A stretch of DNA of 64,000 nucleotides from Bigelowiella natans CCMP2755 (Eukaryota > Protista > Cercozoa), in the NCBI GenBank assembly GCA_000320545.1, contig ADNK01000614.1:187576-251575 (forward strand), read 5' to 3'. Positions 187 to 63,970 of the stretch are shown here, in pieces; position 1 is the first letter of the stretch, and each line of letters starts with the position of its first letter. Below the pieces are notes generated by a model. That model saw only the letters and a program-made list of their open reading frames with translations, had not been told where the DNA came from and did no database searches. A program made the translations under genes and the position numbers.

Positions 187-297
187 TCTGGCAACGACGC
201 AGAATGGAAGGTAAACATTAATAAATATGCCAAACCTGAACCGAATACTGCCCCAGAAGAAGCAACAGTCTCGGCGGTAGAAAAAGCAGCAAAATAG
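187..297 (+). CDS. Probable terminal exon of a gene entering from the left (SGNDAEWKVNINKYAKPEPNTAPEEATVSAVEKAAK*)
   Basis: Pyrimidine tract and ttag acceptor at 186, then 37 open codons to TAG at 295-297. No recognisable domain. Confidence 0.5.
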   Translation, partial: SGNDAEWKVNINKYAKPEPNTAPEEATVSAVEKAAK

Positions 298-486
298 CTG
301 TGGTTACGAGAATATCATCTTAAAGTGTGTTTTTCCCTGCACACATATCAGATATATTTTGTAGCGCAAAGTGTGCTGAAATATGACAATGACAGATTTC
401 TATACCTAATATACATTAACTGTATCCTCCCGAAGGATAGCTGCTCGTTGTGTGTGCGCAGACACGTTAAGACTGCAACTGTCTAT

Positions 487-571
487 ATGAGACGGATGTA
501 ATGAAGTGTTTAAATCTTTTCAATGGTCATCCTAATGTAGCTGTGCAATGCAGCGGCTACAGCGCTTAAAT
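487..571 (+). repeat. Copy A of a short dispersed intergenic element
   Basis: The blocks ATGAGACGGATGTAATGAA (487-505) and GCGGCTACAGCGCTTAAAT (553-571) are each identical over 19 nt to the reverse complement at 40626-40644 and 40543-40561. Confidence 0.85.
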
Positions 572-58974: not shown

Positions 58975-61900
58975 CTACGATTCGGACGCTGCATCCCAAG
59001 GACGACGTTGAACCCCATCATCATCATCATCATCATTGTTGTTGTTGTTGTTGTTGTTGTTGTTGTCGTCGTAAATTCCGCGATGTCGCGAGAAAAAGTC
59101 TGTTTTCCATACAAAATCCGAGTCGTCATCATGGCTCTGCCTTTCATAGCCCTCCTCACTGATCTGTCGAAGCTCCTCCGAAATGTCGTCGAAGACATCA
59201 TCTGAATTTTGGGGAGATAGGGTGAGCAGAGGAGGGTGTAAGACAACGCAGCACAACGCACATCTCACGCACGTAAGTGGTGCAATGTAGGCAATGGCAA
59301 GGACTCGCAAAGACACACTGCGATTGATGTTGTGCTTATATCAATATCAAATTGCACTGATGAAGAAATGCATCATGCTTCTTGTGAAGGACCTCACTTT
59401 CCTCTTTCTTCACTTTTCTTCGCTTTCTCCCTCTCACCTCCCCCCCCTCTCCCTCTCTCTCTCTCTCTCTCTCTCTCTCTATCTATCTTATGTTTCGTTA
59501 AAATACTTGCCTGTTCTCTCATCTAATATACTGCATCACCTTGGCGCTTGGGGTGCTGTCGTCCGTCGTCGTTTGCTCTGCCGCTGCCATGAAGATGTCT
59601 CATTTTCCTCTCCACATACTCTTCGTCTATGTAATGATGATCAAGTGTGAATTGTTCACTTTCTTGCACCAACTCAACCAATACACACATACACACACAC
59701 ACACACACACACACACACACGCACACAGATATATAAATAAATAAATATATATATATATATATATATTTAATAAAGTAAATAATATAAACCCATCGTGTCA
59801 TCATCATCGGTTGAGGAGAGCCGGGGATGGCCGTCTTCACTATAAGTATCTTCATGGCATTGGTATTCACAGCCCATCTGATATAAATGGTGTTAGCGAA
59901 GTAGTTTTAATGATTCTAGTAGGAGGGAACGAGAGGCGTACATGTTGATGATAAGGAAAGACACCCACTCTCCTCCCCCCCTCCCCTCTCTCTCTCTTGT
60001 ACCTTTTCCAGGGTACGAGCAACTTTTCTCGAATATGTGCGCTCCTTCCGACGACGATTGTCTATCTCATCGTTGTATCTGGTGTGAGGAAGAGGGCGTG
60101 TGCTCAAGATTGCATCCACCATCTCCTTCCTACTGCTTTCTTCCCGACCGTCGTGGTATTCGTACCAACGCGCCGGAAGGGGACGAGTTTGGAGCTGATG
60201 ACGACGATCATTAATTTATTTAGTCAGGGCAGCAACACCACCAACCATCAGTTCATTTTTAACAACGATTATGGCGTTATTGCCGTATACTACTTGCGAG
60301 CGTAACGTAGAACACGGACACAGCTAAAACGACGATCGAAATAGTGAAAGCTCAAGTTTCTCAAAGCGAATATAAACATCAAGATATATATATATATATA
60401 TATATATATATATATATCTTTATGTTTATATGCAAATAATGACTGCAGCGGCAAGGGGCGGGGGGGGTGGGGGCCAAAACCTCATGAACAGAGCCGTCTT
60501 TGTTGTCGCGCATAACTAGCCGCCGCCGCAATTTGGAATTCCTGTGGAAAATGAGAGGAAACGATGAGGGAGAACTGCATGTTGGATCAGCAAAGGACAA
60601 GAAGTAATGATCATAACAAGCCTTTGCCCTAGAAAACAATAGCTGAAATCCATAAAGATATTATAAATCACGCTGAACTGTTCTTTCCTGTGGCTGTACG
60701 TGTTTCACATTTGTCCCCCCCCCCCCTTCTCTGCTCTTAATTTTTCGTGTAGGAGCAGAACATCCGATGATTGACTGATTCATTTGCATTTGTGGTAGCT
60801 AAGGAGTTTTTGCACTACTAGGACAACTAACTACGCACGCACGGGTCGTAAACGAAGACGCCGTCCTTTTCATGCTGAACGTCCTTATGCTCTACTTGCT
60901 CGTCGTGGGGGTCGCCTTTCCCGCTCTTTGGCAGTCTAGCCACGCGTATCTAGACGGCACAGTACCATGTAGTATTATTGGCATTATCAATGCTTGCTGC
61001 GACATTTCCTTTCTGCCTATTCGTTCTGTTGTCTTTCCGAAACAAACGGTTCTTCAACATAGAAGGTGGCTGTTCTAACATCGTCGTCGTTAGTGTTGTT
61101 GTGTTGCTCGGTGGTTGACGAATTAATTCAGCTGCAGTTGGATTGCATCGTACCTCGTCGTCTTCGTCGAAGATCCCCCCCCGCCCTCTCCTCCTCCTGC
61201 TTCCAGGTGGCTCGTCAAAGCTCAGCAGGTGCGGTTCCTTCTCCGACTTAATGTTATGCTGCTCCTGAGGAGTGGAGGAGAAGGAGGAGGAGGAGGAGGA
61301 GGGGTTGTCCGAGCACAAACGGACAAACAAGAGGGACCGCAGCAGCAGCAGCAGCAGCAGATGGTGATCAATAAACGCATTTTGAATGATGAAGAACATG
61401 ATGCCGATGAAGTAGTAGAGAAATCCCAACCCTTCTTTCGTCTCTACTACATGCACATTCCTTCTGCTTCTTTTTCTGCCTGTTCTTCTTCTTCTTCTTC
61501 TTCTTTATTAACATCATCATCATCGTCCTCTCCTACTTCCTCCTTTATATCATCATCAACAACCACACATACACACACACACACACACACACACACACCA
61601 GTGTATCCTTCCATTGCTCCTCCGTGTCGTCAGGCGCAGCGCCCCCGTCGTCGCACGATGAAGTTGTCTTTTCAAACATTACATCCATGCGTGGGTTGAG
61701 GCTGCCGTCTTCGAGGACAAGCTCCCTCTCGATCTGTGCGTAAGAAAAGGGATTGCTGTTATGCTGCTGCGGTAGCAGTGGAGGAAAACGACGATACGCG
61801 AGTAGAAAGGAGTAGAGGAGAGGAGGAAGGCTGCTGAATTTGTTGTAGCTGCGTCGTATGCCGTTAAGAAAGTGTGATGGATGGATGGATAGATGGATGG

Positions 61901-63970
61901 ATGGATGACGAAGAAGATCGTGATCGAAATTTTGACATTGATGATGATGATGATGATGGTGATGATGACAACGATAGATGGATCCTGGGGGGAGGGGGGG
62001 GGGGATGACCGCAATGAATTCAGTGCCTAGCGGAAGGCTCGATATCTGATATGTAAATACGCACTTGTGTGTTTGTGCGTGTGTGCGTGTGTGTGTGTGT
62101 GGGTGTTTGTGTGGATAATTGTGTGGTGCAGAACATCTTTGGTAGTTGTAGTAGTAGTAGTAGTAGTTGTAGTAGTAGTAAGTAGTAATAGTAGTAATGC
62201 GTTGGTGACTATCTTGTGCAAACATGCATCATCCGATCATTACTGTTACCACCATGTATAGGAGAAAGGGTAAAGGAAAGAATGCAATTCGACATGATGT
62301 TCGCAATATGTTGTTTTATCATCGATTTTCTCCGGTTTCTCTGCATCCCGTTGTTCTTGTTGTTGTTGATGATGATGATATTGTTGCTATATTGCTGTCT
62401 CTCATCACACTATAAACGTGGCCCCCTTTTCATTTCGGGACGGATTGAATTCGGCCATGTCTCCATTTCTGCTCGGTGTAAAAACATACACCCCACCCTC
62501 ACAACTGAGCAGAACAATGTGTGAGATGTTTTCGTACTAAAGCAACCGTCGGAATATGAATATCCCCAATATATTCGACCAAATTATAAAAATAAACCAG
62601 TTTTTTGGAAGTCGAATGCTTGATCGTCCCCCCCCCCCCCCCCCCCCTTATCCTCATCCTCGTCGTCATCATTGGCACGTACTTGTAGAGTGTGTAGAAG
62701 GTGTTGAAATCAGGGATGATGCTATTGAGATAAGCGAAGATGGCTGTGCACGGGAGATCGGCCGGCAGAAAGATTGAGCTGTGAATAGTAATATTGGTTT
62801 ATTATAGGTTGTTATTGCTATTATGACGGTGATGGGCTCACATCCCATTGTCATCATCACCACCATCTCATGAGCTGCCAAGAAGGACCAACAGCAGGAG
62901 TCACAGTAGCAAACAACACCAATGGCAAGATAGGCCACCTGATCGAGTTGTTCGGAAGCAAGATATGGATATTCGGAACGTAGCTTTTCCCGTCCGCAGG
63001 GCGAAGATCTAGCATTGGACTCGTTTTACCCCCTCTGCTGCTGCTGCTGCTGCTTTCCATCCGTTCTTTTGTGGCTGCTCCAGTGGTAGGGGAGGGCTGC
63101 TGGCGGTGTTGTTGTTGCCGCTGTTGCTTTGGTGGCTTGTGGTGCTCTTCTAAGGTAAGGTCTCTCAAGCCAGTCTTCAAAGTAACAACACCCCGGAAAA
63201 ACAGAAACATGAATATGTATGTATGAAATACAAACACACACACACACACACATATATATATATATATATATATATATATATATATATTCCACACTCAGGC
63301 GATGATCTGACATCTGCTTCCTTCGTCTCATGTTGCATGTATAGTAGAACATGGCCATCACCGCCACCATCACCCCACCATCACCACCACCCCCCCCCCC
63401 TCACTTCCTCCTCTTCCTCCTTCTCCCAACAGCAAAAGCAAAGCTGGGAGCAGTAAAAACAAGCAAACACCTCCAATACAGCAGTCATTTTTCCTTCCTT
63501 TGGCTGCCTTCCTACCCTCCTTGTGCGGAGGAATTCCAGCGGGTCGCTATCCCTCTCCCCCCCCTGCTGTTGCTGCTTAATCTCGCCATCTTTTCGTCGT
63601 CGAGCGTTCCGCTCTTCCTCATGGGCTGTCAGCTGGTTGTGAAACATCATCGCATGGAGGAGGAGGAGGAGGAGGAGGAGGAGGAGAAGGAGGAGAAGGA
63701 GGAGGAGGAGGAAGAAGGAGGGGGGGTATTTCGATCGATAGTAGTTGCTGTTAGTAGTTAATGGACATTTTTTTTTCATATATGGCATTCCGGCGGAGGG
63801 AGGAGGAGTGGGTCCTCGCGGGGGGGGGAATAAAACCTCTTTTTATGTCTCTCTCCCTCATCCCTACAGGGTGCGTGAGTTGCGTGTGGGTAAGACAATA
63901 AATCTAACTCGTTCATCAGCTTTGGGGGGGGGAAAGGCCCTCATCGATTCTCTATTTAAGCCAATACTCT
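58975..63970 (-). CDS. Partial multi-exon hypothetical gene running off the right edge; product not identified
   Basis: Protein-like exons bounded by AG/GT between microsatellite introns, e.g. SIFLPADLPCTAIFAYLNSIIPDFNTFYTLY and IRVARLPKSGKGDPHDEQ..GVFVYDP; acidic last exon NSDDVFDDISEELRQ..DAASES*. Confidence 0.55.
59010..63850. repeat. Microsatellite-dense domain 4 (unidentified gene)
   Basis: (CA)n, (AT)n, (GAG)n, (GAT)n, (TAG)n and poly-C/G runs. Confidence 0.9.

Follow-up and report, generated by a model that had tools for sequence, protein, structure and literature searches.

Our data point to ordinary, gene-dense nuclear DNA in which neighbouring protein genes show a strong but not invariable tendency to occupy opposite strands. 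The DNA in question is a 64-kb stretch of contig ADNK01000614.1 of Bigelowiella natans, called the window in its full length. Together with the mechanism that we propose below, we give this reading a probability of about 0.65. Sixteen genes were resolved (Table 1), in the order A (−), B (+), ADH (−), CUE (−), 2OG (+), ABCC (−), PhyH (+), kinase (−), kinesin (+), Dabb (−), K (+), AP-sigma (−), GH85-like (+) and, beyond a stretch at 48.6 to 51.7 kb, WD40 (−), S1 (+) and R (−). Where one resolved gene directly follows another, the strand switches at 13 of 14 junctions, a count that leaves aside the stretches at 48.6 to 51.7 kb and 61.5 to 64 kb; the sole junction without a switch is the tandem pair ADH-CUE, in which both genes are on the minus strand. 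The chance of 13 switches in 14 is 9e-4 if each junction switches with p = 0.5, 1.2% at a true rate of 0.62 and 10% at 0.75. Opposite-strand pairs are therefore significantly above 0.5, in a window that was itself selected for the pattern. The original prediction had counted 19 gene models with switches at 17 of 18 junctions. Its strong alternation is borne out; its exact numbers are not. Its first model (plus strand, from position 187) found no support here, and the two places where it feared that small missed genes would break the pattern (33700-33915 and 39881-40261) are not protein-like and lack coding support.

The gene models were rebuilt from exact protein look-ups, exon-by-exon searches of Pfam and PDB, word and protein searches and our own hidden Markov model (HMM) gene finder. 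The HMM was self-trained on 264 kb (the window plus the control DNA described below) and went through several versions, among them versions trained by expectation maximization (EM) and masked ones. Unmasked versions were captured by microsatellite "open reading frames" (ORFs), plain EM training split genes into fragments, and the final version still overlooks short-exon genes, for example AP-sigma and the 5′ exons of the kinesin gene. Calibration on reversed sequence indicated that predictions scoring ≥25 are nearly all real and that those scoring <25 are mostly noise. Homology searches used single exons, and joined translations served for reading only; the yield of Pfam on single exons was low, and most long B. 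natans ORFs had no Pfam family. GC/AT skew across the window was too inconsistent for strand calls. Independent evidence for the strand, from exact public proteins or homology, is available for 11 of the 16 genes, and four single-exon genes (CUE, Dabb, PhyH and S1) are letter-identical to public proteins. The strands of genes A, B and K were called by the HMM from coding potential alone.

For the genome of B. natans, 21,708 genes are reported, with an average length of 2,834 bp, 8.8 exons (159 bp) and 184-bp introns (PMC12730881, Table 1), and the median intergenic distance is 960 bp (PMC13746701, Table 1). The gaps in the window, measured from coding sequence (CDS) to CDS, are in line with this median. 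Two opposite-strand genes lying head to head, the arrangement that defines a bidirectional pair, are found at seven junctions, with CDS-to-CDS distances of 271 to 1903 bp (median, 955 bp), and nearly every resolved gene has such a partner. The six tail-to-tail gaps span 615 to 1831 bp (median, 1087 bp), and neither class is uniform in length. With 0.27 to 1.9 kb between resolved neighbours, the gaps are too short to hold an average gene of 2.8 kb.

An alternating gene order splits the intergenic DNA into two classes, head-to-head and tail-to-tail, and the two differ in composition. As a measure we used the RY index, the frequency of purine/pyrimidine alternation in 200-bp windows. The index is identical on both strands and hence cannot be biased by strand calls. 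Its maximum was 0.65 to 0.73 in 6/6 tail-to-tail gaps and 0.52 to 0.59 in 7/7 head-to-head gaps (Mann-Whitney p = 0.0016), and the signal is consistent with every orientation call in the window. The tail-to-tail gaps were also richer in CATG plus TGCA (~21 versus ~10 per kb) and in CTAG (5.0 versus 1.5 per kb). The spacer between the PhyH and kinase genes carries ~1 kb of GCATGC/TGCATGCA/GCTAGC-like words (29780-30960), with 13.1 CATG and 12.0 TGCA per kb compared to 5.7 and 6.2 in the whole window. Among the 46 strong genes of the window and the control, an RY tract was present in 65% of the 3′ flanks and in 9% of the 5′ flanks (Fisher p = 2e-8). Such a tract is not specific to convergent junctions. 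In the ADH-CUE tandem gap, one at 12869-13067 adjoins the CUE stop codon, and in a tandem gap of the control another follows a 3′ end at 159563-160143. With tandem gaps also showing it behind 3′ ends, the tract marks gene ends and not pair boundaries; it is a feature of the single gene. The composition of the spacers fits a division into gaps that hold promoters only and gaps that hold 3′ ends only. The obligatory modules of promoter, two genes and terminator that had been proposed are not supported, given the ADH-CUE pair and the tandem pairs of the control. The tracts in tail-to-tail gaps are not plain microsatellites and mark gene ends well enough to aid annotation. One of them, in the kinesin/Dabb spacer, is overlapped by a dispersed repeat of ~100 to 190 bp (40288-40657), of which ~40 diverged copies were seen on many contigs at 71 to 84% identity, with one fragment at 96%.

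The largest change to the earlier gene map concerns the stretch at 16.3 to 25.7 kb, which had been drawn as three genes (models 7, 8 and 9; −, +, −) and which, judged from its sequence, is one predicted ABCC gene of ~10 kb on the minus strand. Its parts run from high to low coordinates in the standard order of ABCC/MRP full transporters: exons at ~23719-23800 and 22912-23100 that by eye resemble the first transmembrane domain (TMD1); the remainder of TMD1 and, at about 21658, the Walker A motif of the first nucleotide-binding domain (NBD1), whose LSGGQ signature lies at about 20856; an acidic linker; TMD2 at 19251-19484 (ABC_membrane); and NBD2 with its Walker motifs at 17438 (A) and 16843 (B). 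The closest PDB match to NBD1 was ABCC4. The EM-trained HMM returned a single 32-exon minus-strand gene over 16265-25727, and the 5′ end may reach ~26.5 kb. As the parts stand in standard order on one strand, the three earlier models collapse into one gene. The plus-strand model 8 was rejected as spurious; it overlies ABCC exons and microsatellite "ORFs". A long insert of low complexity separates TMD1 from NBD1 in this gene, and dense tri- and dinucleotide repeats in the introns can be mistaken for long ORFs (poly-F, -I, -V, -L and -S).

How could such an order be maintained? In our model, each head-to-head gap (0.3 to 1.9 kb between coding starts, with a 5′ end on either side and free of RY tracts) would act as one shared, nucleosome-free promoter region that fires both ways. 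The tail-to-tail gaps (0.6 to 1.8 kb, with two 3′ ends and a purine/pyrimidine-alternating tract rich in CATG, TGCA and CTAG) would take up the transcript ends of both genes and may serve as zones that tolerate insertions. With a tandem order, a single short (~1-kb) gap would have to hold both terminator and promoter, at the risk of interference by read-through into the next promoter, which may be why the alternating layout is kept. Furthermore, an alternating order would survive inversions or other rearrangements whose breakpoints both fall in 3′ spacers. A bolder version would make B. natans the eukaryote with the most extreme strand alternation of any examined, at ≥80 to 90% of junctions genome-wide, with insertions and breakpoints tolerated only in the RY-rich 3′ spacers and the head-to-head pair as the conserved, shuffled unit; we consider this doubtful.

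The rate of alternation in unselected DNA was estimated from a single control, the first 200 kb of one other contig (G000:C3234:1-200000). One single-exon ORF of this control is identical in every residue to jgi/Bigna1/69364 (also EP00466_Bigelowiella_natans_P020209), which confirms the assembly as that of B. natans. When the strong HMM genes alone were taken, 0.47 to 0.59 of the junctions switched. We read this as a probable lower bound: leaving genes out can only take switches away, and the breaking of genes into fragments depresses the rate as well; a hexosaminidase at 27.3 to 29.4 kb, for example, was split into "neighbours". The RY tracts offer a second route. When only confident genes served as flanks, the ratio of convergent to tandem tracts was 9 to 11, which implies a rate of 0.62 and does not differ significantly from random; with genes recognised by eye it was 11 to 9 (0.71; p = 0.04) and with weak genes 13-14 to 8 (0.76 to 0.78; p < 0.01). 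A tract lay ≤1.5 kb upstream of 3/36 gene starts and downstream of 20/36 gene ends, and this 5′-upstream estimator implies ~15% tandem junctions, that is, an alternation of ~0.85, but it overlooks tandem pairs with long gaps. Taken together, we estimate that about 0.65 to 0.85 of the junctions in unselected B. natans DNA alternate and that tandem pairs are tolerated. On these figures the window exemplifies the pattern well without being extraordinary, and the pattern is a strong tendency, not an obligatory module. Tandem gaps measured 1304 bp in the window (n = 1) and, in a few cases in the control, 1158 bp to >4 kb, compared to the head-to-head median of 955 bp.

Several observations weigh against our reading. 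The window was chosen because of its alternating look. The strong-gene rate of the control is the low one given above, and only those estimates that include weak genes reach significance there; since most predictions scoring <25 are noise, the higher estimates lean on weak genes, some of them recognised by eye only. Noise predictions of the HMM on reversed sequence themselves switch strand at ~0.6, and as they do so, the low end (~0.6) of the control estimates is weak evidence. A clear and several probable tandem pairs lie on the control contig (Table 1). Promoter sharing, the role in termination and the selective cause are all inferred.

The same observations bring up an alternative, namely, that genome-wide alternation is only ~55 to 62%, at the level of the brown alga Ectocarpus or lower, and that the window is an outlier picked by its readers. 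It would explain the strong-gene rate of the control, the RY count of 9:11 that is not significantly off random and the alternation of HMM noise, and a 1.2% chance of 13/14 at p = 0.62 is not negligible across ~1,800 scanned windows. We nevertheless regard it as unlikely, since fragmentation and missed genes depress the strong-only rate, the 5′-upstream estimator gives just ~15% tandem, and several same-strand pairs of strong control genes enclose a weak opposite-strand prediction, recognised by eye only, such as a methyltransferase-like ORF at 52.8 to 53.2 kb and a VPS26C-like ORF at 166.2 to 167.4 kb. In PDB searches, the by-eye methyltransferase and prefoldin calls of the control were not confirmed and VPS26C reached only E = 0.6; the eIF3k match is of no help on this point either, as this gene and its downstream neighbour are both on the plus strand. 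At the other extreme stands a strict architecture, a chromosome tiled by obligatory units of a bidirectional promoter, two divergent genes and a terminator or boundary gap. The alternation of 13/14 window junctions and the perfect separation of head-to-head from tail-to-tail gaps by the RY index are what it predicts. Yet a tandem pair, ADH-CUE, sits within the window, the control adds its own, the RY tract of tandem gaps in both (positions given above) makes the tract a gene-end mark, and two of the switches first counted were an artefact of splitting the one ABCC gene, all of which renders this architecture very improbable. Of the original prediction, then, alternation far above chance survives for the window and the tiling of the whole chromosome does not, the control rate being ~0.6 to 0.85 and not near 1.

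It is also conceivable that the pattern arose from drawing models by hand, with same-strand neighbours merged and spurious antisense ORFs in repeats called genes. Model 8 was indeed spurious, low-complexity ORFs are abundant (16% of the window was masked), and early versions of our HMM yielded antisense shadow calls, one of them at minus 46263-46541 over a plus-strand exon of the GH85-like gene N. An artefact of this kind is nonetheless hard to reconcile with independent strand evidence for 11/16 genes, with gaps that are mostly too short to hide an average gene and with a strand-symmetric signal that agrees with all orientation calls, and we consider it highly implausible.

Table 1. Features of the window and tandem gene pairs of the control contig, with positions (bp) in the respective DNA
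Feature	Position	Strand	Evidence or remark
Gene A, multi-exon	1745-5468 (approximate)	−	HMM score 57; posterior minus over 1.75-5.5 kb
Gene B, one or two HMM models	5740-9475	+	HMM scores 16 and 41; posterior plus over 5.75-9.5 kb; no homology
Zinc-type alcohol dehydrogenase (ADH)	10666-12004	−	Pfam ADH_N and ADH_zinc_N in ORF 11204-12238; HMM score 98
ADH-CUE tandem (head-to-tail) gap	12005-13308		Sole resolved tandem gap of the window, 1304 bp
CUE-domain gene, single exon	13309-14229	−	Exact 306-aa public sequence (P0002); Pfam CUE
Head-to-head spacer CUE/2OG, 463 bp	14230-14692		Maximum RY index 0.52; no CTAG
2OG-Fe(II) oxygenase	14693-15421	+	Pfam 2OG-FeII_Oxy_3, E=1e-7; HMM score 59
ABCC/MRP-type full ABC transporter, ~32 predicted exons	16265-25727	−	Pfam ABC_tran and ABC_membrane on exons; HMM
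PhyH-domain dioxygenase, single exon	27631-29640	+	Exact 669-aa public proteome sequence (P0012); Pfam PhyH
Tail-to-tail spacer PhyH/kinase	29641-31471		Largest RY/palindrome tract, ~29.8-30.96 kb; maximum RY index 0.73
Protein kinase	31472-33200 (5′ bound approximate)	−	Pfam Pkinase 1-66, 70-169 and 172-263 on three exons, down to 31475
Kinesin-FHA gene	34631-39739	+	Pfam Kinesin and FHA; exons of the motor domain, with their GT-AG introns, traced manually
Dabb (stress-responsive A/B barrel) gene, single exon	40724-41911	−	Exact 395-aa public sequence (P0001); Pfam Dabb
Gene K, charged, low complexity	42851-44084	+	HMM score 37; posterior plus; no homology
AP-complex sigma subunit	44700-45750 (approximate)	−	Exon in ORF 44617-44967 matches AP-4 sigma-1 residues 94-129, E=6e-9
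Gene N, GH85-like glycoside hydrolase	46389-48325	+	Pfam Glyco_hydro_85, E=8e-5; public-protein exon mapping
Stretch O (0, 1 or 2 genes)	48600-51700		HMM calls weak and conflicting; flanking RY tracts at 48456-48538 and 51746-52043
WD40-repeat gene	52207-56278	−	Pfam WD40 on two exons; HMM score 140
S1 RNA-binding domain gene, single exon	57234-58238	+	Exact 334-aa public proteome sequence (P0014); Pfam S1
Gene R	59788-61399	−	JGI ab initio model Bigna1/70306 (P0008, 244 aa) maps in five pieces
Microsatellite-laden stretch, no gene assigned	61500-64000		HMM versions conflict
Control, clear tandem pair	156730-159483 / 160641-162392		
Control, probable tandem pair	37144-39841 / 40347-42699		
Control, probable tandem pair	Coatomer-delta-like gene / 72759-83636		
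Control, probable tandem pair	92731-95748 / 100036-100455		
Control, probable tandem pair	101697-102676 / 107685-114271		
Control, probable tandem pair	eIF3k / downstream neighbour at 175997	+ / +	eIF3k from a match

The window as a whole is eukaryotic nuclear DNA of ~46% GC, intron-rich and compact, with few long ORFs and abundant microsatellites, and scans of it for tRNAs and against Rfam gave no match. Simple sequence made up 15 to 16% of the DNA in the window and in the control pieces L003 to L022 (DUST-type filter). Simple repeats captured the unmasked coding model and gave antisense "shadow" genes, a trap for ORF calling by eye. For the individual genes, some details complete the table. 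Gene A had no strong homology and a weak RanBP2-type zinc-finger match in ORF 5037-5624 (E = 0.011). RY tracts follow the 3′ end of gene B (10205-10517) and gene K (44161-44426), and one abuts the 3′ end of gene R (59624-59806). The 90% cluster of the CUE protein includes transcript-derived members from MMETSP. The first exon of the kinesin-FHA gene, with the start codon, lies further upstream of 34631, and inspection by eye placed an N-terminal exon of AP-sigma at 45607-45744. The public 256-aa protein P0017 could be aligned with gene N, one exon after another, at plus 46866-48322, and its relatives P0019 and P0020 lengthen the match to 46389-46565. For gene R, the public ab initio model is the sole source, and our masked HMM disagrees there. 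Stretch O received no support from Pfam, PDB or word search; no homology was found at 61.5 to 64 kb, where a word search of 62.9 to 63.3 kb gave nothing useful.

Three further observations stand apart from gene orientation. A 476-bp tract in the ADH-CUE tandem gap, shortly upstream of the ADH start (12313-12788), has zero TpA, where 34 would be expected from its A/T content, and 14 CpG. The control holds two very large genes, at 72.8 to 83.6 kb and 107.7 to 114.3 kb, with single exons of 1,128 and 1,130 aa and no Pfam family. An ORF on the minus strand of control piece L022 (9631-9999) encodes a Zn(2)-Cys(6) binuclear cluster domain of the fungal type (Pfam Zn_clus, E = 2e-6). Most known examples of this DNA-binding domain are fungal, whereas the one here belongs to a rhizarian alga.

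Alternation of this kind is known from brown algae. In Ectocarpus and related species, >60% of adjacent gene pairs alternate (bioRxiv 10.1101/2024.02.19.579948, citing Cock et al. 2010; PMC7784034, Bourdareau et al. 2021), and in the ~200-Mb genome of Ectocarpus 61.7% of the genes are in divergent pairs, with divergent gaps of 409 bp compared to tandem gaps of 2293 bp (bioRxiv 10.1101/2024.02.19.579948; PMC7784034). B. natans resembles it in having opposite-strand neighbours above chance and many divergent pairs with short common upstream regions, as a tendency and not a rule. The two differ in degree, with just over 60% there and 13/14 in the window (~0.65 to 0.85 as estimated from the control); the alternation in B. 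natans is thus probably at least as strong as that of Ectocarpus, and probably stronger. They also differ in that divergent gaps are much shorter than tandem gaps in Ectocarpus, whereas in the window head-to-head gaps are about as long as tail-to-tail gaps, the tandem gaps being too few to compare. We found no description in the literature of an RY/palindrome tract at the 3′ ends of brown algal genes. Likewise, our literature searches turned up no account of gene orientation in B. natans, although the genome paper (Curtis et al. 2012) may contain a remark on it.

About one human gene in ten belongs to a pair with a bidirectional promoter. In trypanosomatids, directional polycistronic clusters form long same-strand runs with rare strand-switch regions; gene orientation is likewise non-random genome-wide, but the rule is the opposite one, at the other extreme. 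The bidirectional promoters of mammals, plants and yeast (transcription start sites <1 kb apart, e.g., PMC2648788) are similar to the layout of the window in that head-to-head genes a few hundred bp to ~1 kb apart could share one nucleosome-free region. They differ in that they serve a minority of the genes in those genomes, whereas nearly every resolved gene of the window is paired head to head.

For this repeat-rich genome with its short exons, alternation and the 3′ RY tract are strong priors for annotation, and both could inform how two-gene expression cassettes for B. natans are built. Public ATAC-seq (PMC8887012), KAS-seq and Hi-C data exist for this alga. If alternation is as pronounced across the whole genome as in the window, this alga would offer the clearest natural test of a long-standing question, namely, whether it is the avoidance of transcriptional interference that favours divergent promoters and convergent 3′ ends in compact genomes.

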